This document shows positions 5,763 through 57,541 of a stretch of DNA of 64,000 nucleotides, piece after piece. Source of the DNA: Zygnema circumcarinatum SAG 698-1b (taxonomy: Eukaryota > Plantae > Zygnematophyceae). A model generated the notes under the pieces. The model worked only from the letters and a program-made list of their open reading frames with translations. It had not been told where the DNA came from and ran no database searches. The DNA is taken from NCBI GenBank assembly GCA_037447605.1, contig CM074808.1, positions 1,736,001 through 1,800,000 on the forward strand, given 5' to 3'. The position numbers and the translations under genes are program-made. Position 1 is the stretch's first letter, and each line of letters begins with the position of its first letter.

Positions 5763-6900
5763 TCATGCCCCCGAGGTGTCACAGGAAGATCTGTGATCAA
5801 GTCCATACCCACACTGTCCCATTTCCGAAAAGGAGGTGTGAGGGGTTGCAGCTGGCTAGGGATCCTGCCAGTGCGGGGTTTGTTTCGTTGACAAGTTGGA
5901 CAAGCGAGTACATACGCTTTCACATCCCTCGAGAGTCCAGGCCACCGTAACTCCTGAGCAAGGCTTCACCTGCTCTTGCAACCCCATGTGACCTCGGCAC
6001 GGAGGATCATGTACTACCTGCACGAGTCAGCTGCATGGGGCCCCTCGCCTGGGCACGCACCGTAATCACGTCAGTAGTGGTACCGTATCTGTCCTAGGAC
6101 ACCACTTCACCATTACCTTGGCCATCCAGGAACAAAGGATCACCAGTATACCCCTCCTGGATCATCTGTCTGAGATCAGAGAGAGCAGGAGGGTTGACTG
6201 CGTCACTGGTGGAGGGATCTATGACAAAGCATACTGGAGACGGAGACTCGGGGTTGGCCGGCCCCTCACCTCTGTCATCTCGTTCCACCAACACTCGAGT
6301 CGACGAGCGCACCATCCAGGCAAGATGCCGAGGCTGCCTACTCAAGTGGTTCAAGTATATCCGCCGATAAAGCGCGACCCACCGGCAAATAAACCTTTGA
6401 GGAACTCACCTCGGGCCAAGTGGCTCACGCCAAGCAGACAAGGTCTCGCTGGGCTGAGGAACGCCGGGCCAGCGGTGGTCGCTGACTGGCCAGGACTGCC
6501 ACTTTTGGGGCCAGCACCGCCATGTCCTCGTATGCGGACCACCGCAAGCGCTTCCTCGCTCGCTAAGTGTATCAGCTTTGCGCCGGCCGGATTCATTTTG
6601 GCGACTTTCATATGCCAAAGGTTGGCCATCCTGAAACAAGACGGCACCCAAGGCGAATCCCGAAGCATCACAAACCACTTCATAAGGCTTCGACTCGTCC
6701 GCTTAAACGCGAGAGTGGGTGCGTGAATAGTGCATGGCGACACCTTCAATGCATCCCGCATTCGCGGGTCCAGGCGTAAAGGGACACCGAACGTCAAATT
6801 AGTCAAGGGGGTAACCAGTTTACTAAACCCTGGATGAACTTTACTCTAAAATAATTCGCAAAGTCCGTAAAAGACCTCAACCGGGTGCGTGTCAGTTTTC
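5763..6900 (-). mobile_element. Ty3/Gypsy fragment A (RT C-terminus, RNase H, integrase N-terminus), interrupted by the Copia
   Basis: CDASGFALGAVLFQDGQPLAYESR (6406-6678). FSKLVTPLTNLT near 6800-6830. Integrase zinc finger LACPTCQRNKPRTG..WDSVGMDLITDLPVTPRG runs up to the Copia LTR at 5763. Same family as the plus-strand Gypsy at 7-14.6 kb. Confidence 0.85.
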
Positions 6901-6964
6901 TGCTGGCTTCAAGTTTTCACGGAATCTTTAAGCGTGATCGTCGGCGACTCGAATATTGAGGATA

Positions 6965-12900: not shown

Positions 12901-14578
12901 TTATGGCCAAACCGAAAGGGTGAACCGGATTCCGAAGACTATTTTGGAGTATTGATGTGGGGACCCATCCCGATGGACGTGTGGGATGAATCGCCCGCGG
13001 TCGAGTATGCCATTAACAATGCATTCCAGGAATCAATCGGTACCACTCCTTTCTTCTTGAACTTTGGTCAGCATCCTCTAAATCCCCTGCAGCCAAGAGA
13101 TCAGCAGCCAGATGTGTGGAACATGGATGTTCACGTGCTCCCATCCTTGGGGCATGAGGAGCCGGCGGAGTCAACCTCCCGCCAAGCAGTGCTTACCTCC
13201 GGAAAATGTCCGGTGGCGCATGTAGGGCGCGCACTCGGCATGAGCTCATGCGTAAGCCTATGCCGACGACGCCGCGGGTTGGCAAGTAACTACGTGAGCT
13301 TATCAAGTACTGAGCACGCCGAACTTGTGCTCAAGACTTACGGCGAAACCCGTAAGTTGTGGCTCCTCGCCTACGGGACCTTTTCGTCAGGAAGTTTAAT
13401 CGGGTGAGGTCACACGTTGGCTTTAATGCTCATATGAAAAGTGCATCCCGTCTTTCACGGGTCTTCTTAAGGCATACCGCAGCGATGGGAGAGTCCAACC
13501 ACCTCCCCCTCCAGTGGAAGTTGAGGGTGACCTCGAGTATGAGGTAGAGGCCATCCAAACCCACAGGACTGTGAGTAGAGGTCAGACTTCCCGCCACGAA
13601 TATCTCGTGAAATGGTTGGGCTATGGGGTTGAACATAGCACGTGGGAACGTGAGAGCAATCTGACAAATTGCACGGAGCTCCTGAGATTGTACTGGGAGG
13701 CGCAGACCGCTGGTGAGCGGGCGAGGGCGGCTAGGGGGGTTCCCGAACCGCTCCACGCGCTACTCGGAAAGGGACTTGACCGGGATTAACGCTGAAGCCC
13801 TTCCCGCATACCCTTCGCATGCAGGCGCTGCATTCTCTTAAACCGGCCGCCAAGACATTTTTTTCAAAGGAATCCAGGGCGCTCACATACTGGGGAGTAA
13901 TGTAGCGTGAACGCTGCTGAAGGTGATTCTCGAGGCTACGCATCATAGTGATACTATGATCACCCCTTCATCTCAGCCAATGATAGGTTAGGACGCCGCC
14001 AAGACCGGGGCTTTTGGGCTCATCCTTGTGGCTGCAAGGATCTCTTTTGATCGTGACGCCGCCCCGCATTGTGTGTACGGACGCCATCCCACACAGGGAT
14101 CCCGCGCCGCAGACTGCCGCTGCTGGCCAAGAGGCCGAGAGGCCGCACTGCTGCGCTGTAATCTACCAGATGCGTGTGGCATCTTTTGATAGGCACCGCC
14201 CTGCATCGCAGACGACGGGTCAATGCGTCTGACTACGACTCTGGCCGCCAAGGCCACAAGACTAGAGCCGCTACACAGGTCAGCGACGCCCCTGCGAGAT
14301 GCGGGGCGAGACTATTTGCTTGTCCTTAGCCGAGCACCTCGGCTAAGGATCTCGACAACACGCCGGGCGTGGGCTCCCTGACAAGGCAGTCCCGCCCTCC
14401 CCGGCCCTCCACATGCCGGTAGGGGTTCAACTGGGGAGCTTATTGGGACTGGCGCCCCTATTGGAGACCATCCGAGCTCTTTGTACCAGCATTGAGCTCA
14501 CGCTCCTCTCTCTCTCTCTCTCTTCCTCTCTTGACACTCAGACTCTCAGAGCAGCCTGCCAGGGGGCAGGTTGTTACA
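6965..14578 (+). mobile_element. Ty3/Gypsy chromovirus-type retrotransposon B, full-length structure with many indels
   Basis: LTRs about 6965-7585 and 13901-14578, both ending TTGTTACA. PBS-like TTGGTGACGAGCC at 7586. PPT GGGGAGTAA before 13901. gag (about 8450-9300, CFRCRKVGHRSYDC), protease (about 9900), RT (PPWRPIYRLSP..SPFGAPILFVGKKDGSLRM), RNase H (about 11400-12000), integrase (about 12470-13400), chromodomain. Confidence 0.92.
13514..13700 (+). CDS. Chromodomain at the integrase C-terminus of Gypsy B
   Basis: YEVEAIQTHR...YLVKWLGYGVEHSTWERESNL..C.ELLRLYW is a canonical chromodomain pattern with Y/W/Y aromatic residues. Confidence 0.9.
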
Positions 14579-21725: not shown

Positions 21726-24700
21726 ATGGCTCCGTTTGCGGATGAGTCGGAGAACGGATCCGGCATTCCCCGTGAGTGGGAGGGATGGAGGGAGGGAGGG
21801 AGGGAGGGAGGNNNNNNNNNNGGGAGGGAGGGAGAGAGGGAGGGAGAGAGGGAGAGAGGGAGGGAGTGAGGGGCTTTCTGCATTGAGCGCTGAATTGCTT
21901 CCGGGAGGGTGTGCAGATCCGAAGAAGGAGATGGTAGAAATGGATTCGGGTGAGAAGAGGCTGCGCGAGTTGGGCTACAAACAGGAGCTCAAGCGCGGCC
22001 TGGTAATTGCGCGCTACGGGATCCGTAAAGCCTCACATTGCACCCTTAAAAGAGAACAATTGTCCTATAGAACTGGCGATTGAGAATTCCGTGTGCTGTC
22101 TAATTGACTGGTGATTGGTTCATTGATAGATGAATTTTTCACCCCAACTTGAAGTGGAAAGGGAAGAGGGAAGAGTAGAGAGAGGAGCCTCTCCCCTCTC
22201 AGCCACTCTCTTCTCCTCCGTTTCCGTGACATGGGAAGCGCGGCTATGTCCATGCAGAGTGGCTTTACAAACTATGGCTTCGCGTTCTCGGAGATCGGAG
22301 TGATGATGGGGGTCACCGGACTGTACGGCTATGGCTTCGCCTACGGAGGCCCCGTCGCGCTTTTCTGGGGATGGGCCCTCGTCTCTCTCTTCTCCAACTT
22401 CATCGGCGTCTCCCTCGGAGAAATCTGCTCTTCCTTTCCGGTGAGCTGCACTCCTGCCTCTGCTCTGCACTCGGTTTGAGTTTGAGTTCTGAAGCAGGGA
22501 GTGGGTTGGTACTGAAGCGGAGGGCGGTGGGGGTGCGCTGCAGACTGTGGGAGGCGTGTACTTTTGGGCGTACCATTTGGGGGGGAAATATGGCAATGTA
22601 TACTCCTGGATCACGGGCTGGTAGGGCCGCCGCTCTCTCAGCCCCCTCAGGCACTGTCAATTCAATTCAGTTTTTGCAGCAATTAGAATAGAATGTCTAT
22701 CGAAATGCTTGGCTGTGGTCTGAGACTGACTGTCAGTGATGTAGCTATAGTACGCGCTCGTGCTCTCACTCTCATTTTAGTTCTCAATCGCTCTCTCTCC
22801 CTCCCCATCTCTCTTCCTCTCTCTCCCTCTCCTCCGCCTCTCGGCCCCTTGCCCCTCTCTTCTAACTCCTTCCTCACTCTTCCCTCCTGTCCTCACCCCC
22901 TGCACTCCCTTCCTTCTCTCCTTCGCTCACATCCCCTCTCTCCCTCCTCTATCCTCCCTCCTCCCTCCTCCCTCATCCCTCCTCCCTCCTCCCTCCTNNN
23001 NNNNNNNCCCTCCTCCCTCCTCCCTCCTCCCTCCTCCCTCCTCCCTCCTTCGTCCCCTCCTTCTCACTACCACCTCTCTCTCTCGCTTTGTCTCTCATTT
23101 GCCCTGTCCAAAATTGGCACGGGAGCTTAATGGCGATTGGGACGTACATGAGAGAACACGTTTCTCTCCTCTCTCTTTTTTTCCTCTCCTTCTCTCACTC
23201 TCCCTCCATCTCCTCCGTCCTCCCTCCACCTTCCTCCCTCCACTCTCCTTTCCCGCCCTTCTCTCCTCTTCCCCACCCACCCTCCTCTCTCTCTCTTGCT
23301 CACTTGCTCTCCCTCTCTCTCTCTCTCACAAACACACACTCTCATTATATGCCGTAATTTTCACCCACCTCTCCCTCCCCCCCGGATCTGCGGTTTCGCA
23401 GGTTCAACCTCGTGGCCGGCTTCGCGAACGTGGCGGCCGTGGACATGATCTGCGCGGACCTGATCGGCGAGATGGCGCTGCTCGCGACCGGCGATTGGTA
23501 CCCCAACAAGGACCAAATGCTCGGGATCTTCTGCGCGGTGCTCGCCACGCACATGGCGCTCAACCTCATCGGTCAGCGCCCGCCCGCAACCCAACCCGAC
23601 CCAACCCAACCCAACCCAACCCAACCCAAACCCAACCCAACCCAAACCAGTCGCAGGCACGCAGGGGAGGTCGAGGGGCACTCAAGCTGCATTGGAATGA
23701 AACGTGCATCCGAGACTGAGTGCTTGTAGAGGCGGCTGGTGAAGGACTCTCTTTTTAGTCTGAAATCAAGCTGTTTGTGGGCAAGATAGTCGCTAAGACT
23801 GACTGGAAATGCATTTTCACTAAGAGTACTTCGATAATTTAAGCCTTGTCTGTTTATATTCTTAGCTGCACGGCTGTTCTCGGTGTTTCCTTGTCCCTGT
23901 TCGAATGACAATGACTTGAGGAATTGTAAGGTTTAAATATCGACAGCATTTTGTAATTTATCGCTCCTGAACGCTAATGTGACTACTTTGTCTGCCCTTC
24001 ACAGTCATCCCAGGTATCAGTAACAGCGTAGCCTGGTGACAGATTTGGAACGTCCTGAGGTCAATTTTAGCGAGGCATTGAGCCGAGCATAAACTCATCA
24101 TTTGTGCCTCTCTCGAATGCGCAGGCCTCTCGATCGTCGGACCGCTGGAAAACATCGCCATTTTTTGGGACTTTTTTGGCTGCATCATCGTTTCGATCAC
24201 ACTGCTCGCGGTTGCTCCGACGCATCAGTCGGCCGACTTTGTGTTCACCAAATTCATCAGCGACCAAGCGCCGGGGATACACAGCAAGCCGTACATCTTT
24301 TCGCTGGGTCTGCTCTCTTCTCTCTTCACTCTTATCGGTAAGCGTTGACAAGCCAACTCCTCCAATGATAATTCGTAGATTTTTTCACGTCAGCTATCAC
24401 AGCGAACTTAACTTTTTGCCCTGATTAAACTTCGATAATATAGTACGCCAATCAATGCAATCATCTATTTACCCGACTCTACCGTAAAATCTAACAGGTT
24501 GAGAAACAAAAAGAAATTAAAGATTTTGGCATATTTAGTCTTTGAATTTTTTATTTTTTTTTGAATTCGCTTTCTTAAATCAAAAAAATTTTGACCTAGA
24601 GTGTTCAAAGTTTAACCCTATTCAATAAGATTGGGAATTGAGAAATTAAGTAAACTCGTTTCTCAATTTCTCAACCTGTTCGGTTTTACAGTAACTCCAT

Positions 24701-26711
24701 TCGTTACCCTTACCCCTACCCCTAACCCTAACCATAACCCTAACCCTAATCCTAACCCTAACCCTACCTCCTCGCTGACGAGTCGCAGGGTACGACGCGG
24801 CGGCGCACATGACGGAGGAGACGAAGGGCGCCGACAAGACGACGGGGATGGCCATTTGGCTCGCGGTCGTGGTCTCGTCCCTCAACGGCTTCCTCTACAT
24901 CCTCGCGCTCACCTTCAGCATCCAGGGGGTCCGCCTCCTCCCCCCTGCCCCTGCAGTTAGGCGCACGGGAGGGAGAGGGGAGGGAGGAGGGAGGAGGGAA
25001 AGGAGAGAGAGGGGCAAGATCAAAGGGAGAGTAGCGATGGAGGCAGAGGAAAGAGAGGAAGTGCGCAGCTTTGCGAGATGAGGGTTAGGGTTAGACAAGG
25101 TTGGGAACGGGGGAAGCATGAGAGGCTGACGTGAATCTATGGGCAGTGAACATGATCATCGTATGTTTAGAGATTTGGCCATACGCGTTTTCTTAACTGT
25201 AGGGTTTGGAAAAGTCGTTTTTTTTTCTGATATCGTTTTTTAGGATGGAAACCAGAGGTCAAGAGATTGTCTGTAGGCCGTGCGGTTTACAAACTCTGGA
25301 CAAGGCTCCTCGCTTCAAGCTGTAACTGATTGGTTGCATATTGTGCGACTATACGAAGAAGGGAGAAATCGAGAGTAATCAGTAGTGCTCGGGAAACGTT
25401 CCGAAGATTATTCTTATGGGTAGAGAGAGGGGACGAACTTGACGTTTGAACATTATTCGTACACCATTCTGTGCAGGATCCGTTACATTTGCTCAACAGC
25501 GACAATGAATCAGGAGGTTATGCCGGTGCTCAAATTTATTACGATGTGTTCAAGGCGCGATATGGCAGCGGGAAGGGAGGCGTGGCTCTTCTCATCTTCC
25601 CTACCGTGGCTGCGTGGTTTTCCGGCATGTCTTGCCTTACAGCTGCATCCCGCATTGTAAGTATGCCTCCTTCCTGCTAAGCAACATCACCGCCAGCACA
25701 CCCAGCTAAAAAAATCTCCTCCGTCTGCTCTCATCCTACTCTGACATTTTTGAATCTCCCGGCAAGTACTCGGCTTGACTTAGGGTTGCCCTTCTGCTGA
25801 CCTCTCTCTCCTCGTGCAAATCGTGCAGTGCTTCGCATTCAGCAGAGATAGGGCTCTTCCAGGATGGCAGCTATGGCGCAAGGTCACCCCCTACACGGGC
25901 ACCCCCATGATGGCGATCGTCCTTGTGGGAATCTGCGCTTTCGGCTTTGCGCTGCTCTCACTCACGGGCCCCACTGCCTTCGCTGCGGTCACCTCTGTGG
26001 TGGTTATCGGCTTCTACATCTCATATCTCATTCCCATCTTTTTGCGACTCACAGTCGGCCTTCGGTCATTTGTGGTACGGTTCACTCTCGGCCTTCCAGG
26101 GTCCTGCATCATTGAGCCTGGAAGCATGTTTCTTGAGTGAGGTCGATAGGGACTCGGCTATATGCCCTGTAGGTGTGCTTGCATGTTTTTTTTTTGTCTA
26201 TTTTCTTCTATTTTTGAGTTGTCTTGTCACCACTAATTGCAAAATTTATGGGGTCTGGGTGCTACAGAGAGGACCCTTCCATGCAGGCCCATTCTCCCTT
26301 GTCTTTGGCTGGCTGTCCGTGTTTTGGATCATAGCTCTTGTGGTGATTCTTTGTCTCCCTGCTGGTGAGTTCGTACTCTACTTTCCTCCTCCAAAGATCA
26401 CTTTGGAAAGCTTCCTGCTTTAATGCTGCCTTTTTTTTGGTCTACAATTTTCCCAACTGCAATAGCAGATGACTATGTGAGTATGCCATTCCTATTGGAG
26501 TCAAAGCTATCTGTCGAAACACTGCTCAATCTGCTCATTGGCACTGTCTGCAGTCTATCCCGTTGACGCCAGCACTCTCAACTACGCCCCGATCACTGTT
26601 GGCGGCACCATTATAATTGCTGCTCTTGGCTGGATAGGCGCATATTTCTGGCGGCCTGGGTTTTTCAAGGGGCCGGTCCCGACTTTAGAGTCTGAGGAAA
26701 TCAAGCATTGA
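21726..26711 (+). CDS. BAT1: BAT1-like amino acid/amine permease (APC superfamily, ACT family), 11 exons, 531 aa
   Basis: Exons 21726-21771, 21917-22002, 22258-22440, 22544-22620, 23402-23571, 24125-24337, 24789-24928, 25477-25656, 25829-26074, 26268-26364, 26554-26711 sum to 1596 nt in frame. Motifs DSGEKRLRELGYKQELKR, GGPVALFWGW, EICSSFPTVGGVYFW, GYDAAAHMTEETK, FAFSRDRALP, LNYAPI. Confidence 0.93.
23586..23648. repeat. (CCCAA)n microsatellite in a permease intron
   Basis: Read directly from the sequence. Confidence 0.9.
24712..24767. repeat. (CCCTAA)n telomere-type hexamer array just upstream of a 3' splice site
   Basis: cctaaccctaaccataaccctaaccctaatcctaaccctaacccta; acceptor AG at 24787-24788. 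Confidence 0.9.
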
Positions 26712-27907
26712 GGGAGGAGAAATCAATGAATAAGGACAGACATGACATATTAGGCAGTGCAGGAAGTGGGGGGGGGGGGGGGGATGGAGAGGGTTAGCTT
26801 TGGCGACAGAAATGGGCCGGAAATAACATTAGGGTTAGTAGCCGTTCGTAGGTGTGGGAGCAGCTGTGGTAGGGCTTCCAGCGAGTCCGCTCCTCTGAAA
26901 AGTAGGGCAGCGGAGCCTTCCGCAGCTCCTGCCACAATACTGCAATACAGGTTATGGTGTTTCTGTGTTGGTCATTGTTTTAGTTATTGCAGCCAAGCCA
27001 AGCTAGTGCTGGCTGGAAGGAGGACAATACTCCAGCTTTTGTATTGTGACATGTTCAATATTTTATTGCTGGCATGCAGTATTTGCAGCCACTGTAAACC
27101 AATCCTCCCCAAAGCCGCTGCTCTGAAGGCCCCTCGCTTGGCTCAGAAAACAATTACAATTAAGGAGCTATTCCCAAAGGAGGCCCCACCGCTGCCTGCC
27201 TCCTCGTCCGAAAAAACGCAAAATGTCTCTGTTCAATTTCACGCTGGTGACACGCGATTCGCAGTTCAGTGAGCCACCACGGAACTGCCTGCACGGAAGC
27301 GGTCTGCAGAGCCCCCCCTCCCATTGGCGGAGCCGATCACGTGGGCCCTCCCCCGGGGCCCACGTGTCCTCCCTCTCTTGTCCCTCCTCACCTTCGGACA
27401 TTTCGTACATAGGAGTTACTGTACTGTACAGTAAGCGAAGCTCTCACTTTTCTACTCGAAAGGGGCACTCTGCCTCTGCGCCTTTGAGCTCGCCTGGAAG
27501 CCTCAGGGACTGCAGCGCTGCGGGCTGGAGCAACGTGAGGTGAAGGAGGGGGCGAACACTGGGCCCTCTTTTTTTGGCGGAGATGTTTCTCTGAGTTTCT
27601 AGCTGCCGGAGTTACGGAAAACATGGAAATCTGGTTTTACTAATGCAAAGTGTTGTGTTGCGTGAAAGTTTTGGTGGCAGACATTGACGAGGATACTGGT
27701 TGTTGTTTGCATGGAGAAAGAGTGAAATTTGAAGAAATTTTGGTCGAGGAAATGCATTTGGTTTAAATTGGAAGTTCAATACATTGGCATTCAAAGAGGA
27801 GTCGCGTGACTTCACGGACTGGTATGAAGCTGCAGGCCTGAGAAATTTCTGCTGGTGCGATGGAACGATTTTGCAGGAACTTTGGACAGTTGTAAAGAAG
27901 TTCGACT

Positions 27908-30900
27908 ATGGCTAGCTGGACTGGGAATGGACCTGTGCCGGAGAAGCTGGAGGTCAGAAATGTCCTCATCGCCGCCTGCCTGTGGATTCTTGAGCGAGAC
28001 ATTATGCTGGGATAGAAAATTTGACGAAAAAATTGTGCTTGTAGTGGTGGAACTCGAGCATCGTTCAGAACAGTCTGAATAGTGAATGGTTCTCTTATAA
28101 ATGGAATTCTGCTCTGATGAAGCATGGCTACCTATTAGATGCGCACATGCCGTCAAGTTGTGTGTTACGCGTATTTATTTTTGCATTAAGCTGGAGAAAT
28201 ACATTGACGCAGAAAGCTGGCTTTCAGCTCAGAAAGATAATCAGAAGCTTACAGCGACGATTTGGAAATATTTTAGACGGATAAAGCATCATGATGTGAA
28301 GATGCGATGGAAGTTGCAATACAACAATTCGTTCGCAAATGCTGAAGCCTTTCTCTAATTTTATCTGCAGTCGCTTGAAGTATTTTTAACCTTTGCGAGT
28401 TGAGTGACTTGATGCCCGAGAGATCAACATATCCGTAGCATATCTCACCACTGTTTCACCGTCGTCAGGCTAAGAACTTTGGAAAACGGTCGGTCGAGTT
28501 TGCTTCCCTTTCATTTCACTTACTTGAGGCGCCACTCCGTGCTAGCACTGCAGGATCTCCAAAGTGTCCTCCAATCGAAGGGAGTAAAATACGCCATTGG
28601 CAGCTTTGTGGACATACACGGCTGCTGTAAGGGCAAGGTATTCTTTTCCTAGCTATTGAGAGCAGCTGATGAAGCAGCACTTTTCTTCTGAAATGTGGCC
28701 AAAGAATTCTCAGAAGTGGTTAATAGCTCAATTGTTTCTAATTTCTTGAATTGATTAAACGGCAGATAGAGATAGATCCATGATTTAGTCGGTGGTTGAT
28801 CAAATTCACGCATGCCAAAAGCGAATTGTACGACACTGTCTCTAAACGGTGACTTGGCATCAAATCTCCATTGGGGTATAGCATTACTGTAAAGCAAGGA
28901 CCTAATATAAGTATAGTCTAAGGGTGGCTAAAAAGCCTAAAACGTTTGCCGCATGGTGCGCCTATTTCGTAACTCCTGTTTTATATATTCTACAAAGAAG
29001 AAAAATGGAGATGTCTTCAAGTTCTCGATATAGGACAGGTGCCATTTGGTGAAGGTCTGGTGTGACACGACACGGGACACCGCCAAACCTTATTTCAATC
29101 CATTTCTTGGCACGCTCAATATTACAATGGCATTCCCACCTATCTAGTGCATCATTGACCTTGATTGTATTTGTGCCGCGCAGATTGTTCCTTTGAGCCA
29201 CTTTGTCCATATGTTTGAAGGTTCAGAGCTATTTACAGGTGCAGCATTAGATGGTGTTCCTCAGGAGGTTTCTGACGAGGAAGTGGCGACCATGCCCGAT
29301 GCAAAAGGGTAAAGTCTGAGTACAATTTCCATTTCAATAGAGTACTTTATGTCTAATGGTCTATGTCTTCGTGACTTATGTTAGTACTTGCTCCCGTCGT
29401 TCTTCCAGTTGTGTAAATGACTGCCGGCCTAGTTGTTGAGATCTCAACGAGACAAATAACAGCAATGCAGCTTGTAGCCAAAGTTCGCTGACTTCCACAT
29501 TGCAGCTTCAACGTTATTGCCACATTGATGATGATGAAGGCAATAATTCCCATACTGTCAAGCACAGTCTTGCAGTTTTTTGAAAGGGAAAAATGATTAT
29601 GGCAGGTGCACGATTCTTCCGTGGAATCGAGAAATTGCATGGTTCCCAAGTGACCTTTACTTGTCTGGTAAGTGGTCTTGCATCGCGGCTCTTACAACCA
29701 AGCACATGACTTGTGAGAAAATGAAATTGTTTTGAAAGTTTGGAAAGTCCACGCTAGATCCATTAAGCGGGCCAGACCTGATCCTTAATGACCCTGATAA
29801 GAGTGGGAAAATGCATGTGAAATTGCTGTTTATTGCAGGTCGACCATTTGAAGCTTGCTGCCGCACCATTTTGAAGCGTCAGCTAGCAGAAGCTGAGAAG
29901 TTAGGCTACATGTTTAATTTGGGTATCGAGACAGAATTTTTCATTCTTAAAGGTGCGTGAATCCTTAGCCCTCGTGAGGCAAGCTATCTTCAGTTACTCG
30001 TTATAAAACACGCTTGTGAGCCAGTAGTTAGTTATCCAAGTTATCAACACATGATGCACACATCATCACATCATACTGTCAAATTTCAGTATGCAAGATG
30101 CTGCACGTCAGGCTTCCTGCCCCTTTTCTCTGTAAAACGGAAACAAAGCCTCTCACACGCAGTGAAGTAACTTGTGCCATCCGGCTCTCCTCAGATCAGA
30201 CCAACCCGATGGCAAGTTTGTACCTATAAGCGACCGAGACACTCTAGACAAGCCATGCTACGATGTTGTGGGCTTTTTGGACAACTACAAGTGGATGGAT
30301 GAGATTGTCCAGGCCATGAATGAGCTCGGATGGGATGTCTATTCCTTTGATCATGAGGACGGGAATGGGCAATTCGAGACGGACTTTGCCTACAGGTGCG
30401 CCCTCAAGGCGATGTGCCATGTTTGCATAGCACACAGGTTTTTCCACCTTGAGTAGCTTCAAAAGCAGGAATGACGTGCAATAACTGTCGTTCGCAGTTG
30501 CAATCAGTTGCTTTTCAAAATGATCGATTTTACACTGCGCTACGACAATCACTTGATGTGACGTAACAAAGTATTTTTGGATGTGGCAGCGATGCTTTGA
30601 CCATGGCTGATCGTTTCACTTTCTTCCGCCTAATGGTGAAGGAGATAGCCCGTAAACATGGCTACTTTGCAACCTTCATGCCCAAACCCTTCAAGAACCG
30701 AACTGGTAAGTAGGGCAAAGTCCAGTTTACGTCAGCAGCAGAAGCTAATGCACGTCTAATCAATGAGCCAATGCCATTTTTATTTGCCGGCAATGATCAG
30801 CTGATGAATGTGGTAGGTTACGGATTGGTATTGAAGCACCTTACAACCGGGGGATGTTGGCAGGCAGTGGAGCGCATTACAATATGTCGCTGGCGGATTC

Positions 30901-32252
30901 AAAGACAAAGGAAAATCTCTTTGAATGTAAGGATGATCCTCGGGGCTGCGGCCTTTCAGAACTTGGATATCATTTCATTGCCGGCATTCTGAAGCACGGT
31001 CAGGCTCTCTCGGCCGTCATCGCACCCACTGTGAACAGGTGATTCCCAAACCTAAGGAGAAGCGAACGCCCTGAAATATTTCCACGTCCAAAAACTTGGA
31101 AGGAAATTGCTGAGCGGTCTGCCCTCACCCACTCCTGAGCTTCCCACTTTTTTAGAAAAGTCGGAGGCGAGTCTTCTGCACCATCCATGAATCGCAACAT
31201 CATGAAGTCAGATATGCTATATGCTCGCTAAAACGCTGCGTTTGTTGTGGATTGCAGCTACAAGCGGTTAGTGGCACAGGGCAGCATGTCTGGCTTCACA
31301 TGGGCCCCGGTCTATGTCTGCTACGGCAACAACAACCGCACCAACATGCTCCGTATTCCGCTAGGTGGTGGGCGGGTGGAATGTCGGGCTGCAGATATTG
31401 CTACTAATCTGTACCTTGGTGAGACCTAAACGTTCTGAGGATTTCAGCAAGATGAATGCATCACATGAATGAACTGCGTGCAAGATTCCCCCGCACACGC
31501 AATAAAAATTTAAGCATGAAGGGAGCCTTGGTGATTTGTACGATTGGGTCACGTGACCTTTATTCCCTCATTGTGAGCAAAATGAGCTGCAATGGGCGAT
31601 TGGTATAACCTGTGCATTGACGTGCCTTTGTAGGGAAAAGTTCGCAATGCATCAGGGAATCAGGATACGCAGCATCATTGCAATTGACCTGCCAATTCTT
31701 GATTCAAGCGGGTGCTGCAGACGATGTTCGCGCAATTCTCTTTTGTCTTTCTGATTAGATGGAGTGACTATGTGGGTGCAGGAGCTGCAATGATCTTGGC
31801 GGCAGGCCTGGAAGGCGTCCGGGAGAAATTGGACCCTGGACAGCCTCATACTGAAAACATGTACAAAATGACTCTCGAAGAGCTCAAGGAGCAAAAGATC
31901 GAAACACTCCCACGCACTCTTGGAGAAGCTGTTGAAGCCTTTGCAGGTATGATTACTCGAGGCTGCCTGCTTGCAACTCCTATGGCTCCATGCGCTCGTG
32001 ATTGTAGTCAGTCAGTAGGATCTTTTCACCAGTCCGGTTGTGCTTCATGTAGTATGGTACACCTGTGAACAGGTTGAATCGGTTCTAAAGTAGTGTGTTC
32101 ACTGCTTTCGTGTGGCAGCGGATCCGCTGAGCAAGGAAGTATTCGGAGAGCAGATGTTCAAAAGCTTTGTGGAGTACAAGTCCAGGGAGTGGGCGGAGTA
32201 CCACACGCACGTGTCCGATTGGGAGATCGAGCGGTATCTCAAGTTCTTTTAA
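27908..32252 (+). CDS. glnT: Bacterial-type 'type III glutamate-ammonia ligase' (GlnT / gamma-glutamylmethylamide synthetase-like), 11 exons, 458 aa
   Basis: Exons 27908-27952, 28554-28637, 29184-29308, 29606-29667, 29839-29952, 30200-30395, 30590-30705, 30864-31038, 31258-31418, 31782-31946, 32119-32252 sum to 1377 nt with no internal stop; all introns are GT-AG. Motifs [115 protein letters not shown]. Exon 1 is the least certain. Confidence 0.9.
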
Positions 32253-33039
32253 ATTGCATTGTGCATACTCACTGCTCCGCTTCAGATCGGTTATTTATGC
32301 TGCGCTCGTCACTAGCATGTTGCCATTAGCCTGCGTGCCGTCAATGCAATGGACCTTATCTGGCAGCCACCGTGGAAAGTATTGATTATCTGTTGCTAGC
32401 CCCACAAAGGTGAATAAGATTTTTGTCGCATTGACATCCTAGAAACAAGGACATCCTCAAGAAGAGCAGAGGGCCGTAGTAGCCACAGACGGAGCGAGAT
32501 CCGCTCAAGCAGCAGCGGAGGAGGGTCTGTCTCCGCCTCGCTCCTCAAAAGCTTCCACGCATGAAATAGAATTGGCGAGCTCTCCCTATCCGTACAGCGT
32601 CATGTTCGTACGACCGGGAATGACGGCGCCGTATTGTACGAAAACAATTTACGGCCGCCCTTCAATTTTAAATACTTTAATTTTGAGTCCGTGACCTGAA
32701 TACCTGATCGCTAGAGTTTTAGATTTCAGAGTTTTAGAGTTCAATCAAACATCTTTTCTCTTTTCAGAATTGGAAAGTTCTAATATCTAAAAGATTCAGA
32801 GATTTAGAACACTTTTAGAATGAGCGTACAACCGTTGAAATAGAACGGAACGTACGGTCGTACGGTTAGTGCTGGCACGTCAGAGAGGCTTCCGTACGAT
32901 CGTGTGGCCGTATTATTGTACGGCCCTTCTAAAAGTGTTTTATAAAACGGAATTGGAATTTAATTTCTAAATTCTAAAAATTCCTTGACTTTTAGAATCT
33001 GTATTGGAATTGTAATACACTCCACAGTTCGGACCAGTG

Positions 33040-39568: not shown

Positions 39569-42500
39569 ATGGCTGATCCCAAGAGAGTTCATTTGGAGAG
39601 GTCTGTGATCTGGTCAGCGCCATCAAAGGAGAAACAAGCGGAGTCGAAAGGGTTGAAGGGATTGGTTTCTTACACAGCTCAGCATCAGCATAGTGGAAGG
39701 GATGAAACGGAGAGCAAACAGAGCGAGGCGTGCACATGGAACTTCGGAGAGTTTGGAAAGTAAGTCGGTTTGGTCAAGACTGGACTTGAAGTTTTCAATT
39801 TACTGCACCCAACCCAATTTTACTCAATTATACTTGTAACAACCAGTACGGGTAAAGTCTCGCTACTTAAAAGTAGAGCTGAACTTCAGTCTTGTGGAAT
39901 TCGTTTTGTCAAGTAAAACAGGCTTAAACATTGGCCATACTTAATCAGACGAGATCAGGACTCGCTAGTTAGAAATCTGAAGCTTCTACTTTAGTTAATG
40001 AGATTAAATAGTTAACATGATAAAAGCAAATGATTGGAGCCCAAGAATGAGTGGAAGATTACAGAGGCTGCTCCTTTACACGCAGATCGTTAGAAACAAG
40101 ACGAGAGCACATTTCTCTGCTTGTCATTCTTAGGCGCCTCCATGGGTTTAATCTGCAGAAACTAGTTGAAGCTGTTCTTCTGCAAACATGAAAATGAACA
40201 ACAAATAACCTTTACCGAAGCTCCTCCATCCTCTATTTCCTGACCACTTGTCAGCTAATTTGAACTCGTGACTTTTTCATCACCAATGTTGAATGATGAA
40301 GTAAAGGTGCCTTATGGTTGCATTGGATGGTTTTCTCTCAGGTACATGAACGAGAAGACGAGAAAACTTCGCGAGCAGTTTCAGTCAGACGCTACGGAGA
40401 GGCTGTTTCAGTGAGTGGTTTTTTTTTTGCTTCTTTTTGTACCAGCTTTTCTTTCTCGAAAAAATGATTAATGAAACATTTGAGACTGAATGTTGGCAGA
40501 TTTTCCATATTTACCTCTTCACCCATAACAAAAAGGATATTTCCATGTTCAGTGTTCGTGTTCAAGTCTGTGCTGTGTCATTCCTATTTTCTAAAAAAGA
40601 AAACGCCTTGCTACTTAATCAGCAGTCGTGTCAGCCTTCACTCATTTGTCCCTCTTGTATTGCTCAAGGTTTTTAGGGTTAGTCTTATTGTCAATGCCAC
40701 GGGATGCATTCGCAGGCCTCCAAAAGTCCATAGAGCCGACGAGAGTTTGAAGACTGTCTCCTTGGACGGTCTCAATAATATTTTTGAAGGGGTCACCATA
40801 TGGGTGAATGGATACACCACTCCCCCTCATCAGGTACAACTCTCTGCTTCGTTATCAATACACCTCACATGAACTTCGTGAGGACCTGTAGCCCAACCAC
40901 ATCTACTTCTTCAATGTTCTGGTTCGTTGAGAAGAGAGATATAGTTTTCCTCATTGTCTGGCACTATTCACTGGACGAGCGTCGTTCTATTCCAATCTGT
41001 TTTATTGTTTATTTTCTTTGGAATTTTAGGCTGGTAATTTCTGCTTTTTAAAGGTATCCCGAACAAATTGTGGCAGGAGCTCCGACGCCTCATGTTGGCA
41101 CATGGAGGCATCTTTGAAAATTATTACAGCAACTCACGGGTGACGCATATCATCTGCGAACATCTTCCTGACGGAAAATACCTCGACTATAGGTTTGCTC
41201 CATGCAGCTCATAATACAACCCTTTTAAGAATGGTTAGAGGTTATGTATGATTTTCTTGTTGAGATCTGAGGAGTCGACTGACAGATCTTAAACTCGAGA
41301 ACAGCAACGTTATTATGCAATAGTGTGCACAGAGGACGACTTTAAAGAGTTCCCAAGGTGGGCCAACGCCTCCGGTTATGAAATTGTTGTTTGCAATTAA
41401 TGTAGTGCAAGCTTAACCAAAATGTCCAAACCAAAGCATCTCATTGAAAAGAAAGAATCTGGAATGTATGGGAGTGATTCAGCATTTACAATCAACTGTA
41501 GGTGAACGGACTAGCGTGGAAGATGGGGAACGTCCAAATTTTCGCTTTTGTGGATTTCGAATTTCAGGATGTAAGCTTTTGAATCTGGGTTGCAGGCACA
41601 AGAAAAAACTTCCTCCCATCTTGAAGCCTCAATGGGTGACCGACTCCATCAAGGCGGGGAGACTGCTGCCAGGTGGCGCTTTGCTACTCGCTGTCTTCTC
41701 GTTGTCGTTTCTTTTACCTTTTGCTTCCGCTCCGTTCCAAGGACTCTGTTTGACGGATCTCCTCTACCTCTTTCTTTCTCGTTCCTTTTTTCAAACTCCG
41801 GTGATGGAAATTATTACTTTTTTTTGGGTGCTTTAGCGTTTATCCGTGACTTGCCGGGAGGTTTGCACTCCGTCGAGCTTGTTAGCAATTACTTTAGTAA
41901 GCTGCGACGATAAGACCTGCATTCTGTTGTTGATGGGAGGAGTTCGGCATGTGATGGCGGCTGCAGTCGATCATTACAAGCTGCTCCGCTTAGCCTACGA
42001 CCATCCCGGGCAAAGTACTCTCGATCCGACCTTAAAGAAATCTCCGGCTCATTACGCTTTGGAAGGCTCACGTGGAGGCAGTTCAAGGAAAGGTAATTCG
42101 CAGGGAGACTTGGAAACCGAAAAGGAAGTTATGGAAAGAATTGCTGCGCCGGATGAGGGGGAAAGTATGATGGCCACAAGGGAAGCAGAGGAAGGGGGGT
42201 TCAGCAAACCAAGGCCAGATGCAGTGAATTTTGTGGAGTGCGGCTACCTTCATATGAATCCAAACAGTGATGGGAAGAGTGCGAAAGGGGGGCTTTGCCA
42301 TGAAGAGTTAGTGCAGTCTGACAACTTAGCATGTGGACCTATCGGAGTCAACCTAGAGAGGAAACAAGATCTTTCTGACATGAGAAGATGGGCCATTGAA
42401 GATCAAGCGGGAATGTCAATGGAAGTCGCAGTGGAAAGAAGTAATGGTCCAGCTGCAAAGGGCACACCCATGGCAGAGTCTGTCAATGGGGACCAAAGAG

Positions 42501-45500
42501 CTGGACAAGCCCTGATTTTGGATGAAGATGAGGGAAGACATGGCGATGGAGATGAGACGAATAATGTGGAGAAGGAGGGGAGAGGCGATGTGCAGAGGGG
42601 GTCAGCCACGAGTCCCAGTAAGGTGGTCCCTGCTCGCTCTCACTCCACCAAGGGAGATCCAAACTTTATACAGAACTACTACAAGGCAAGTGCTGCACTT
42701 CAACCGCCATTGTCACCTCAAAATCATGTCATCCTGTTTGCAGATCTTAGTGTTTTACCATATCCTCGACGTGTCTGCCGGCCGTACAAGCTAATAAACC
42801 CATTTCTGATGTTCCCTGCAGCATTCCCGCCTTCATTTCATAGGCACATGGCGGAACCGCTACCAGGCAGCCCATGGGTCGGCAGGTCCCCTGCCTTTTC
42901 CAGAATCTCTCAGAGAGGGGGAGAGGGAAATGCACGGCAGCCATGGCCGCAGTGGTGAGCAGCCCCCAGTGCCAAAGGTTGGCTCGGCGGAGCGGACCAT
43001 TCTTCATATTGACATGGACTGCTTCTTTGTGTCGGTCGTTGTACGCAATCGACCCGAGCTCGTGAATGAATCCGTGGCAGTGTGCCACTCAGACAGCTCG
43101 AGAGGGACGGCAGAGATTTCGTCAGCCAACTATGTGGCCAGAAAGTTTGGAGTAAAGGCGGGGATGTTTATGCGGGAGGCTAAGTCGCGATGTCCAAACC
43201 TTGTTGTTCTTCCGTATGACTTCGAGGCATATCAAGAAGTAGCAGATCAAGTGAGTGAGAGCGCATGTGGAGAAAAGCAAAGTAGCTGTGTGGTCTGGAC
43301 TAAGTCTCCTCTGCTGTTTCTATGCAGTCAGAGCCTTTCCCATTTTTCTCTGCTTCATGAAAGTGCATTGTGCAGTCTAAGTTGTTTTCGTTTAACGGTC
43401 TTGTTGACACCAACTCGTAAATTTAGGTAAGAGGCATCCTCAGAATGCAAATGCAATCCAAATCAGATTTTGGCGAATCTTTCAGCGAGAATGTGGTTTT
43501 CTCTTCCGTCTGCTGCACCCAGGTGTACTCTATTCTCCACCGTCACAGCAGCGTTGTGCAGGCCCTCAGCTGCGACGAGGCATTTCTTGATATCACCGGC
43601 TTGGGAGATGCAAACGAAATCGCTCTCTCCATCAGAAAAGAAATTTTCCAAACGACCCGCTGCACTGCAAGTGCTGGGATCGGCCCCAACCTGCTTCTCG
43701 CCCGCCTTGCCACCCGCAGAGCAAAACCTGACGGCCAACTTCAGGTGTCACTCGCTCAGGTGAGACAGAATCACCACTTTCATCATTTTTTTTTTTTTAG
43801 TTATTGACAAATATCCTGTCTGTTTGCTGCAAGTTACGCATCCACGACCAGCATATGCCAAATTTTTTTTTTTTTTTCCCTCTGCTCTTTCACCCACAGG
43901 CTTCCGAGTTTGTAGCAGACCTGCCGGTTGCAGACCTGCATGGGGTCGGCTGGGCACTTCGTGACAGACTGCACTCCAAGGGAGTGAAAACCTGTGCAGA
44001 TTTGCTGCAGCTCTCACTTGAAACCCTTCAACGCGAGTTTGGGGAGAAAACAGGAGACATGCTGCACTCGTACGCGCGGGGGAGAGACTCGCGGTCCGTG
44101 CAATCTGCGCAGGAGAGGAAGTCTATTGGAGCAGAGGTCAACTGGGGAGTGAGATTTTCAAACGATGGCGATGCACAGACCTTTCTGCAGGGACTTGTAG
44201 AGGAAGTTTGTCGGCGTCTCTCAGCTGCGCGAGTGAAGGGGCGGACCCTCTGTCTTAAAGCAAAGAAGCGGAAAGCTGATGCTCCCAAGGAGCCGGCCAA
44301 GTTCATGGGTTGTGGGGCATGTGATAATTTGAGCCGCTCTGCGAATCTTGGTGCTGCGACAGATGACCCCTTAGTGTTGTTGAAGGTAAGCAGGAGGCTG
44401 TATGCAGCTCTGCAGCTGAACCCTTTGGAAGTGAGGGGGGTGGGCCTGCAAGTGACAAGGCTTGATTCTTCCTTGGGCGGAGGAAGGAGTGGTTTTGCTG
44501 GAGGGGGCTCCTTGCAGGGCCGCCTCTCCGCACCTTGGGGTTCAGGGGAGCAAAGGGGGAGAGCTGGGAGGGCTGAGGGAGGGGATGTGGGTGGTGATCC
44601 GCATTCAGAAGCAGAGGAAGCTGAAACGGTTATGAACTCTGAGCAGCAGCCGGAGCTGGGAGGAGGAGTGGAACATGAGGAGTTAGAGGTCAGGGAGGCA
44701 GTGAAGAGGCGTGAGGAGGGTCTGGGGGTGAGGAGTGTGGAGGTCATTCAAGGAGAGGAGGGGAAAGAGGAAGTGGAAGGGAGGGGCATGGGGTTCAGGG
44801 AGCAAACAAAAGGGGAGCGATTGACAGAAGGAGGAAATTTTCAGAGGGAGGGAGATGCACGAGAGGAAAGCTTGCAGGTGAAGGATAAAGCCGTAATCCA
44901 GGCCCCCTTCCTGCCTGCGGAGGGAGTATCGGGGGAAGCAGGTCCAAGTATGCAGCAGCGGGTTAAAGAGTCTCACGGACTACCGTCCGTTTCTCAGCTT
45001 GATCCAACGGTCCTTGCAGAGTTGCCTGAGCAGATCATTGCGGAGTTAAAAGCAGCTTACGACGCAGACTGGGGTTCGGATCAATGGAACCTTCGAAAGC
45101 AAGAGGTCGTAGGGAGATGTGAAATGAAGAGGCATTGTGAAAACCTTGAAGGTATGAGAAATGGTGGGGAGACGGAGAGGGAGGAAGAGGAGGCTTTGCC
45201 TCATCAACTCATGCCAAACGGCTCTATGATTAACCCGAAGGATAGTGAGGGGACGGTGTGCTTGGATGTCGCACTAGCGAATGGCAGTAGGCAAACAGAA
45301 ATGGATAGGGGGAACCGTGATATTACCGAACACGCAAGCGTGGAAGTTCTCCCACCAGCTTCTCAGGTAAAGTGGTGAACCTCGGAACATACTTTTGAAC
45401 ATACATATGCTGAAGAAGTGCTCGATGTCTGGCAGTTTCTGAGAGGGGACGAAAGCTCTGTCGAGAAGAGGGAAAGATGAGGTGTGTACTCAGGTCTCCT

Positions 45501-47237
45501 CACTCAATCCTGCTCTCTACCCCCCTCTCTCTCCGTCCTTCTCTCCCTCCCTCCCGGCCTGCAGCTGGACCATGCTGTGCTGGACGCTCTCCCACTGGAA
45601 TTACGGCGCGAGTTGGAGCGTGCCTACAAGCAGAGGGAAGTCGGCATTCGGAGAAGGGCGAGCTCACCTCCCCGAACGCATACAGCAACAGGCATGGCTA
45701 CAAGGTGAGAAAAAGGCAGGAAATCTTCGAAGGATAAATTAATGGAAGCGGAGTGGAGAGGTCATTACTCTGCCTGGGCACTGATGCGTACGGTGAAAAA
45801 TGGTAGCTACCAAATGAAGGCACGACATCATTCCGGGAAATAGTCTTTTAGTTGTATTCGAAGTTTGGAAACGATTGCGTTCCACGTGCAGCTTTTTGGT
45901 AAATGCAGAGTATTGCAGGGGCATGCTCACTCTAACAGGCAGCGAGTGTGTTGCAGGGGGAGGAAACGTGCTCAATTCGCCGACCGAGGTGATCGCAAAA
46001 GGCAGCGGACACTCTTTCAGTTGGTGAAGACAAACGATCCGGTAGGTTCAAGTCATAACCAGTTCGTCAATACAGATTGTCCGGAGTGCAACCCCTACAA
46101 GTGGGATGAATTGGAGCACAGGACCTCTTGCTCTCTGCTGAGAAACGAGTCCTTGAGACCTTGAAAAAAAGTGAGAGAAAGGATCTGAAACTTGCATGTG
46201 GGTGGTTGTTGTGAGGGAGGTTGTGTGTGCTGTGCCAGATTCCTCAAAGAAGCAGTCACTCCGACACAGGGGGGGGCTGCAGTGAGAGTACTGTGAGCCA
46301 TTTTTCAGAGGAATATGTCTCAAAAGAAGACATGGCAGAACTCACCAGCAATGCAGCAAACTCGATGCATCCTGCTGCAGACTGCCCTACTTTGCGACTT
46401 GGGGGTCAGGAATATGAGACACATGCGGAGCAAAGACTTAAGCCGACAGAGGAGAGGGAACACGAAGGGCTTGCTAGTAGTTGGTCAGTGTCGCTCACTC
46501 AAATAGACAAGCAAGTGCTGAGTGAGCTACCGCAGGATGTGCAAGAGGATGTCTTGCGAATAGCGCCTCCTCATAGAAAGGACATTCGAGGCAGTTGTGG
46601 AAGCATTTTGAAAGGGGAAGAGGCAAGAGGAATGCCATCTGTTGCCCAAGTCAAAGAAGTGACAAACTTTAAGGTCAAAGGGCCGCAAGAGAACACGTTG
46701 AAAACCCCACTTTGGATAACGTTCTTGACATGTAAATATTCGAAGAACAGTTATGCGCAGTTTCCAGCTGAGACAGCTGCATCAAAGAATGGCCCATCTT
46801 CTTTGTCACAAGCGCTGAAGCAGGTGTGGTGCAGCGGCTGCTGTCAGCATGTCCCCCCTGACGTGGCCCCCTCCGCAGCCGCCACGTGCAGCGCAGCGGT
46901 TGTTGAGTACGCGGAGAGGGTCGTTGAGCGCGACCTTGAAGAAGTGGCGGCACTCGCCGCCATGCTTCGCAGGTCAGTGAGTCAATGTTGGTCGGAGAGG
47001 GTACAGTAAGCAGCAAGAAGCAGCCACAGGGAAGTGAATGTGAATGTGAATGTGAACATTGGGTTTCGTTCCTTTCGATCTTGCAGGTTGGCAAGTCAAT
47101 GGCCGGTCTGGCAGCTTGTGGAAAGCAGCTCTGTTCCAGTCATCCAGGTGAGAGTGAACGTGACAAGGGAGGGGGGGCAGAAAGGAATAGAATTGGCTCA
47201 GCATGCTTACAGGATCATCACATTCGGGGGTTCGTGA
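39569..47237 (+). CDS. REV1: DNA repair protein REV1 (BRCT, Y-family polymerase, UBM-like repeats, C-terminal domain), multi-exon
   Basis: FGKYMNEKTRKLREQF; BRCT (IFEGVTIWVNGYTTP..HGGIFENYY..VTHIIC..LPD..ILKPQWVTDS); HSTKGDPNF..SRLHFIGTW; ILHIDMDCFFVSV; SSANYVARKFGVKAGMF; VQALSCDEAFLD; RKSIGAEVNWGVRF; RGVGLQVTRL. The 3' end coordinate is tentative. Confidence 0.95.
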
Positions 47238-57189: not shown

Positions 57190-57541
57190 GCTTCGTCATG
57201 ACGTCTCTATGTCATGTATAAGATTCACATTCCATAACGTTCAACACGTATTACTGGTACGAGAAAGTTAAATCAAACACACTTTCAGAATAGATATTTG
57301 CAATAATTTGAACTGTCGAAATAGATTGATAACAGTATAGTGGCAGAACTGAGCTTCTAATCTGTAAAGTTTAAAATAATCGAATATAAGGAGGTGAAGT
57401 GATATGTACAACATTTTTTCCCTGAGCTCCATCAGAAAGAAGCTCAACACCATCCTTTGAGAAAGAAGGTGGGGGCACAACCTACTGAAATGATGAAATG
57501 CCTGATCATCTTTAACATTGGCTACAGAAGACTCAAGCTCA

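Follow-up and report, generated by a model that had tools for sequence, protein, structure and literature searches.

The 64,000-nucleotide stretch analysed here (positions 1,736,001 to 1,800,000 of contig CM074808.1, assembly GCA_037447605.1, from the zygnematophycean alga Zygnema circumcarinatum SAG 698-1b; hereafter the window, numbered from its first letter) carries at 27908-32252 on the plus strand a gene for a ligase of the glutamine synthetase (GS) superfamily, thousands of orthologues of which were found in bacteria. The gene is intact, spliced and expressed, and its product is assigned by profile comparison to the GlnT/GmaS family, GmaS being gamma-glutamylmethylamide synthetase. The spliced model was rebuilt from the raw window sequence and gave a coding sequence (CDS) of 1377 nucleotides (nt), consisting of 458 codons and a stop codon in 11 coding exons, with GT..AG borders on every intron. 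This is the complete reading frame that had been proposed in the original prediction, and the protein motifs quoted there are all present in the spliced product.

Four public RNA runs of the same organism supplied contigs that were mapped onto 27300-32900. Eight of the ten coding introns (1-7 and 10) were seen as GT..AG joints at the predicted borders, while in three runs 27539 was joined to 27877 across an additional GT..AG intron (27540-27876) in the 5' untranslated region (5'UTR). The ligase gene is therefore one of 12 exons and 11 introns, the ten introns originally counted being the coding ones. The junctions of introns 8 and 9 are supported by collinearity with an intronless mRNA, a 1925-nt transcript contig from another run (L002) whose protein (P0176) shares 88% identity with the window protein across the full 458 residues; the spliced CDS aligned with this contig in one gapless high-scoring segment pair (78.5% nucleotide identity, CDS positions 69-1376). 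The features of the gene are as follows.

27300..27539 (+): 5'UTR exon, its 3' end set by a spliced joint in the RNA contigs; 27300 is an unmapped 5' end
27877..27952 (+): start-codon exon (coding exon 1, coding part 27908-27952), ATG at 27908; RNA joint
28554..28637 (+): coding exon 2, TIGR03105 positions 2-27, carrying Lys43 (GmaS Lys30'); both joints in RNA
29184..29308 (+): coding exon 3, Asp50' loop region, with Thr61 and Ala64 replacing GS Asp50' and Ser53'; RNA and profile
29606..29667 (+): coding exon 4 (20 residues), aligning to orthologues; both joints in RNA
29839..29952 (+): coding exon 5, start of the Gln-synt_C domain; profiles and RNA
30200..30395 (+): coding exon 6 (KPCYD), amine/metal pocket with Tyr164, Ser192, Asp194, Glu196, Glu203 and Asp205; profile and RNA
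30590..30705 (+): coding exon 7; profiles and RNA
30864..31038 (+): coding exon 8 (SGAHYNMS ... APTVN); upstream joint in RNA, downstream only through collinearity with L002
31258..31418 (+): coding exon 9, flap region (SGFTWAP) with Trp321, Arg333 and Arg338; both junctions through collinearity with L002
31782..31946 (+): coding exon 10; profiles, downstream joint in RNA
32119..32252 (+): coding exon 11 with the stop codon; model, profile and RNA
30587..32626 (-): spliced natural antisense transcript overlapping exons 7-11 and the 3' untranslated region; CT..AC joints in several runs

The region of introns 8 and 9 is one in which the RNA is dominated by the antisense transcript. Its minus-strand introns are 31176-31917, 31176-31609, 31176-31414 and 31474-31609 (joints 31175>31918, 31175>31610, 31175>31415 and 31473>31610), and the rebuilt antisense isoform has no open reading frame (ORF) longer than 22 residues and is thus likely to be a non-coding natural antisense RNA. 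A minor alternative acceptor of intron 5 was also seen in one run at 30195, 5 bases upstream of the main acceptor at 30200; its use would shift the frame and give an unproductive isoform.

The exon with the ATG also carries an in-frame TAA (27893-27895), 12 nt ahead of the start codon, and the preceding exon is 5'UTR. This excludes a longer N-terminus and leaves no space for a transit peptide, the absence of which had been read correctly from the genomic sequence. Similarity to the bacterial proteins is seen from about residue 13 onward. The N-terminus MASWTGN is kept in P0176, and the two related EukProt proteins P0295 and P0366 (SM000003S11135 and SM000417S15261), which we take from the SM... 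form of their identifiers to be those of Spirogloea muscicola, both begin with MASFT. As there is no targeting extension, the enzyme is probably cytosolic.

Family membership was examined with NCBIfam TIGR03105 ("type III glutamate-ammonia ligase", GlnT/GmaS family), for which the curated cut-off is 469.6 bits. All of exons 2-11 except the 20-residue exon 4 gave collinear matches covering profile positions 2-434, and the separately scored exon pieces total approximately 431 bits, the cut-off being one for full-length proteins. P0176 served as a full-length proxy for the window protein on the curated profiles and scored 588.9 bits, with Spirogloea P0295 at 559.6 bits, both above the cut-off. 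With TIGR00653 (GlnA), P0176 reached 343.1 bits against a cut-off of 429.15, and both proteins fell under the cut-offs for GlnA and for gamma-glutamylputrescine synthetase. A custom profile made from 42 bacterial orthologues gave 877 bits for the window protein and 875 for P0176, and Pfam Gln-synt_C (PF00120) covers exons 5-11. The best solved relatives are 9qur, a glutamate-methylamine ligase (E 9e-123), and 7cql, the Rhodovulum GmaS (RhGmaS; E 4.5e-95), which was deposited under the name 'type III glutamate-ammonia ligase'; ordinary structures of type I glutamine synthetase (GSI) rank lower, at E ~1e-79. By these scores the window protein is a member of TIGR03105, in the GlnT/GmaS branch of the GSI-type superfamily, as had been predicted from its motifs.

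To place the active site, residues were mapped through alignments to the B. subtilis GS and to RhGmaS, with the roles of residues taken from the published work on the latter (PMC7948447). The correspondences are as follows.

GS Asp50'/Asp53' (ammonium binding): Thr61 in the window protein; GS residue lost (FDGSS in GS, FTGAA here)
GS Ser53': Ala64; GS residue lost (same motif)
GS flap Glu (E327 in E. coli, E304 in B. subtilis): Trp321, as Trp300 of RhGmaS (GY-EAP in GS, GFTWAP here)
RhGmaS Asp177 (catalytic): Asp194, kept
RhGmaS Glu186 (catalytic): Glu203, kept
RhGmaS Arg312 (catalytic): Arg333, kept
RhGmaS Lys30', Tyr147 and Glu179: Lys43, Tyr164 and Glu196, kept
RhGmaS Gln175 (methylamine pocket): Ser192, differs
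RhGmaS Asn188 (methylamine pocket): Asp205, differs

The methylamine pocket of RhGmaS (Tyr147, Gln175, Asp177, Glu179, Glu186, Asn188 and Lys30') is thus kept at five of its seven positions. At the positions of Ser192 and Asp205 both 9qur and 7cql have Gln and Asn, and two far GmaS-like matches have Ala and Asn; the position of RhGmaS Ala48' is taken by Thr61. The acidic metal ligands and the arginines (Asp194, Glu196, Glu203, Arg333 and Arg338) are all found in the window protein and do not vary within the clade, and a 12-residue active-site signature is the same in 46 of 46 clade members, which include the eukaryotes, cyanobacteria, alpha- and gammaproteobacteria, actinobacteria and the P0023 outgroup. 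The residues that define a classical glutamine synthetase (Asp50', Ser53' and the flap Glu) are all missing from the window protein, which has the catalytic residues of GmaS and an incomplete methylamine pocket.

Given these residues, the window enzyme would most likely act as gamma-glutamylmethylamide synthetase does. With ATP and Mg2+/Mn2+, the gamma-carboxyl of glutamate would be activated as an acyl phosphate that Arg333 stabilises; Asp194 would take a proton from the incoming amine, Glu203 would resolve the tetrahedral intermediate, and the product would be a gamma-glutamyl amide. The loss of Asp50' and of the flap Glu, together with the two changed pocket residues, suggests that a small nitrogen base is the probable nucleophile, one different from ammonia and not necessarily methylamine; the enzyme is best described as a probable GmaS-like glutamate-amine ligase for which ammonia is probably not the main substrate. 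A substrate other than that of GmaS had already been suspected in the original prediction from an N-terminal motif. The suspicion stands, but on the pocket residues Ser192 and Asp205, that motif not being its basis.

The genes surrounding the bacterial orthologues bear on the same question. In three Leptolyngbya loci (L003-L005) and one of Marinobacter (L006), the ligase gene lies inside clusters with an ATP-binding cassette (ABC) importer of the NitT/TauT type, a urea/guanidine-carboxylase-like protein of about 1200 residues and two DUF1989 proteins of the carboxyguanidine deiminase type, with an allophanate hydrolase, among these four, in L006 only. Guanidine-I riboswitches were found in all four at the Rfam gathering score, and RF00442 (68-90 bits) occurs within a few kb of the ligase in these as well as in L023, L024, L030, L031 and L032. 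The ligase genes of these further loci, too, are close to genes for NitT/TauT ABC importers, for two DUF1989 proteins and for a guanidine/urea carboxylase. Twenty-five metagenome loci share 71% identity or more with the window protein; genes of this ABC importer type lie within 5 kb in 23 of them, and 5 of the 13 scanned have a guanidine-I riboswitch in their flanks. Other gammaproteobacteria (L001, L011, L015-L019 and L045) have a different conserved arrangement, in which the ligase is accompanied by a divergently oriented alpha/beta hydrolase, sharing 49-54% identity with its Marinobacter counterpart, and by a TetR regulator and an ABC system of the NMT1 type.

A guanidine link was considered as a universal feature of the subclade and rejected. 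No guanidine riboswitch was present in seven scanned gammaproteobacterial loci (L001, L011 and L015-L019) or in seven scanned alphaproteobacterial, cyanobacterial and unclassified loci, and unrelated neighbours were found in alphaproteobacterial loci and in the close cyanobacterium-like L007. Pfam families indicative of the N-methylglutamate pathway (mgsABC, mgdABCD) were not listed in the gene-by-gene tables of L001 and L003-L006, and no genes of N-methylglutamate type were seen among the sampled neighbours of L007, L009 and L018; the remaining 90-odd bacterial loci were screened for guanidine and ABC neighbours only. Within the window there are no homologs of the bacterial neighbour genes, and no papers mentioning a GS-like gene in guanidine-riboswitch clusters were found. 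These neighbourhoods suggest a link of the subclade with uptake of small nitrogen compounds, and with guanidine in its closest relatives, the substrate of the ligase itself being a separate matter. In L001 the ligase protein P0008 (7715-9033) is split into two called genes of 343 and 96 residues, with a tail frame that gives 'SATATTTAP'; this is a frameshift in the bacterial genome assembly.

Relatives were collected with an exhaustive search using exon 6 and three word-indexed searches, in databases including EukProt, nr and UniRef. Among the matches listed, the highest identities (74-77%) are with filamentous cyanobacteria, most of them from soil or subaerial habitats, for example Leptolyngbya, Stenomitos, Oculatella, Elainellaceae and Chroococcidiopsidaceae. 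Identity to the window protein is 67-70% for gammaproteobacteria and 62-66% for actinobacteria. The only eukaryotic relatives among the matches listed, the window's own organism not being in the protein database, are the P0176 transcript and the two proteins P0295 and P0366. The best 80 loci of a metagenome contig scan were all intronless, with identities of at most 77%.

A maximum-likelihood tree (LG+C20+F+G4) was rooted on the P0023 clade; P0093, P0051 and P0034 were dropped as outgroup, as their branches of 5-10 substitutions per site left the root unstable. The window protein, P0176 and the Spirogloea proteins form a clade with support of 100/99, and cyanobacteria and eukaryotes together one with 94/90. 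Within the latter, the eukaryotes branch inside the cyanobacteria: they diverge after Nodosilinea (84/98), where other cyanobacterial lineages join them in a polytomy. A Gloeobacterales copy is nested in the cyanobacterial crown. The most likely donor, on this topology, was a cyanobacterium-like organism. An old transfer from a bacterium to an alga, as first proposed, agrees with the position of the eukaryotic clade among cyanobacteria in the best tree, but the topology tests given below leave the donor unfixed.

The Spirogloea gene models give an indication of the age of the gene. P0295 is 76% identical to the window protein, and both models carry a 10-residue insertion at the site of window intron 2 (P0295 residues 44-53; KVADLYGVTQ and KVADLFRVTQ), while one of them is without approximately 51 residues, the gap starting exactly at the site of window intron 7. 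These irregularities are probably annotation slips at shared introns and, if so, both the introns and the acquisition are older than the divergence of the two lineages. It is logical to assume that the gene was acquired before the split from the Spirogloea muscicola lineage and that it later gained its 11 introns and a host-like codon usage.

Taken as a whole, the best explanation of these data is a functional nuclear gene of cyanobacterial-type descent that encodes a GmaS-like ligase, and we would put its probability at roughly 0.7. In this explanation the gene structure, its expression, the family, the conserved residues, the eukaryotic clade and the neighbourhoods of the bacterial genes are direct observations; the mechanism, the class of substrate, the location in the cell, the donor and the timing are inferred. 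A number of points weigh against it. The match lists comprise the best 120 rows, mostly cyanobacterial, and more divergent eukaryotic orthologues may lie beyond them. In approximately unbiased (AU) tests, a tree with the cyanobacteria together and the eukaryotes outside them was not rejected (p 0.287), nor was one with the eukaryotes beside proteobacteria and actinobacteria (p 0.222). Introns 8 and 9 have no direct joint among the listed RNA joints of the organism. No characterised enzyme of the subclade with this Thr/Ser/Asp combination was found in the literature, so that any substrate named for it is a guess. Finally, RhGmaS takes ammonium (NH4Cl) poorly but measurably (PMC7948447), and the window enzyme may by this token have a weak glutamine synthetase role.

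As the donor looks cyanobacterial, an endosymbiotic origin is a live rival to a later transfer. The gene would then be one of the plastid ancestor, moved to the nucleus, lost in most Archaeplastida and kept in a few streptophyte algae. The place of the eukaryotic clade among cyanobacteria in the best tree fits such a history, and so does the first of the AU tests, which allows the eukaryotes to be sister to all the sampled cyanobacteria. However, the protein has neither a transit peptide nor room for one, and the absence of any other eukaryote group among the matches listed from EukProt, nr and UniRef would call for many independent losses. The gene is also patchy and mobile among cyanobacteria, as the Gloeobacterales copy inside the crown indicates. 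A single later bacterial transfer, which needs one gain instead of the many losses of a plastid origin and agrees with the missing transit peptide, is consequently preferred with fair assurance, and the endosymbiotic relic is considered unlikely, if still worth keeping in mind.

With regard to function, the enzyme could instead be a third glutamine synthetase, of bacterial type, assimilating ammonium in the cytosol. TIGR03105 is labelled by NCBIfam as an equivalog for glutamate-ammonia ligase, some bacterial orthologues sit in guanidine-degradation clusters, which release ammonia, and GmaS enzymes are partly active with NH4Cl (PMC7948447). Set against this, the residues that bind and deprotonate ammonium (Asp50' and Ser53') are replaced by Thr and Ala and the flap Glu by Trp, and the GlnA profile gave P0176 343 bits where 429 are needed. 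Plant-lineage organisms, moreover, already have type II glutamine synthetase (GSII) enzymes for ammonium assimilation. A plain glutamine synthetase is on balance an improbable reading, although one with some arguments in its favour.

The GmaS-like ligase preferred here leaves room for a more specific suggestion, drawn by analogy with the bacterial clusters, that the algal enzyme and its closest cyanobacterial relatives act on guanidine or another small nitrogen base. We offer this as a speculative and rather doubtful extension. If it were true, the enzyme would either gamma-glutamylate the base directly or capture its nitrogen, the base being one for which no plant metabolism is known; some streptophyte algae would have a bacterial-type route for scavenging or detoxifying small nitrogen compounds, and the Thr/Ser/Asp subclade would represent a new enzyme specificity in the GS superfamily.

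Vertical descent from an old plant GSI-like lineage, of the NodGS/FluG type or of that of KnGLNA of Klebsormidium, was also weighed, as GSI-like genes are known in plants. NodGS of plants and FluG of fungi carry an N-terminal amidohydrolase fusion, whereas the window protein has no amidohydrolase domain and the upstream in-frame stop excludes an N-terminal fusion of this type. The protein is nearest to those of cyanobacteria, at approximately 76% identity. KnGLNA, one such gene reported from Klebsormidium nitens (PMC9310647), was tried as an orthologue and rejected, since its printed sequence differs throughout (e.g., AGSSCHVHMS and SKDNRTAPFRI) and is that of a different GSI-like protein from another subfamily. 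Descent from this lineage is very improbable.

Intron-containing genes of eukaryote type occur on both sides of the ligase gene within the window, which itself holds a single ligase copy. The other features identified are as follows.

21900-26710 (+): multi-exon gene for an AA_permease_2 protein (eukaryote-type APC amino-acid permease; N-terminus MVEMDSGEKRLRELGYKQELKR), upstream of the ligase and on the same strand
41800-47100 (+): REV1-like Y-family DNA polymerase (IMS, IMS_HHH and IMS_C domains)
54281-55090 (-): C2-domain protein (Pfam-confirmed) with a Gly-rich tail
57500-58100 (-): candidate ORF which by appearance resembles the C2-domain neighbour
60732 onward (+): aspartate kinase with an N-terminal extension resembling a transit peptide

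The nearest Atlas clusters of the permease gene are eukaryotic, and some of its introns are filled by low-complexity Pro/Ser-rich and PNPTQ-type repeats. Positions 1-13500 hold retrotransposon-derived ORFs (integrase-like and reverse-transcriptase-like fragments) and short runs of N, which appear as XXXX in the translations. A functional pairing of permease and ligase was considered and set aside, as nothing supports it and the conserved partner of the bacterial ligases is an ABC importer, which is absent from the window; the tandem order is presumably a coincidence.

The GC content at third codon positions (GC3) of the ligase CDS is 0.56, compared with 0.49-0.69 in the neighbouring genes, and its introns have 44% GC. 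Between the window protein and P0176 the proportion of differences is 0.079 at non-synonymous sites (pN) and 0.77, which is saturated, at synonymous sites (pS), and this contrast indicates strong purifying selection on the ligase. Bacterial contamination or misassembly, for which only the protein identity of approximately 76% to cyanobacteria could speak, was argued against from the outset and can practically be dismissed, given eleven GT-AG introns (nine of them seen spliced in RNA contigs of the organism), flanking intron-containing genes of eukaryote type in the same 64 kb, a GC3 inside the range of the neighbours, purifying selection, and no listed bacterial or metagenome sequence above 79% identity.

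Genome work on Spirogloea and Mesotaenium has reportedly described the transfer of bacterial genes into streptophyte algae, and a further bacterial gene in the algae near land plants is one more case and no surprise in kind. The Spirogloea orthologues are already in a public proteome; no paper on a eukaryotic gene of GlnT/GmaS type, or on this Spirogloea gene, was found in a literature search that did not reach subscription journals. The case is an unusually clean one, the gene being intact, spliced, expressed, under strong purifying selection and common to at least two algal lineages, and it concerns nitrogen metabolism, for which GSII enzymes are regarded as the mainstay of the plant lineage. 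It also draws attention to a large bacterial subclade whose invariant signature matches neither glutamine synthetase nor proven GmaS. The substrate of this Thr/Ser/Asp subclade is a more interesting question than the transfer and, once found, would tell what thousands of bacterial 'type III glutamine synthetases' do and also show what the algae have gained.

Among known systems, the proteins of Spirogloea muscicola (P0295 and P0366) share with the window protein their clade, a MAS(W/F)T N-terminus and the active site. The cyanobacterial TIGR03105 proteins of Leptolyngbya sp. FACHB-711 (P0188) and L. boryana NIES-2135 (P0220) are of the same size, 75-77% identical over their full length, placed in the same tree clade and identical in the 12-residue signature; in contrast to the Leptolyngbya genes, the algal gene has 11 introns and stands alone beside genes of eukaryote type. 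With GmaS (EC 6.3.4.12; 9qur and 7cql) the window protein shares the catalytic Asp, Glu and Arg, Lys30', Tyr147, the Trp of the flap and the lack of Asp50', and it differs in having Ser for Gln175, Asp for Asn188 and Thr for Ala48'. Canonical GSI GlnA (4lnf of B. subtilis and 1f52 of Salmonella) has the same fold and Gln-synt_C domain, and its metal, ATP and glutamate ligands are kept in the window protein, but identity is approximately 35-40% (by eye) and other residues stand in place of Asp50', Ser53' and the flap Glu. NodGS, FluG and KnGLNA are likewise proteins of the GSI superfamily encoded in nuclear genomes of the plant lineage.

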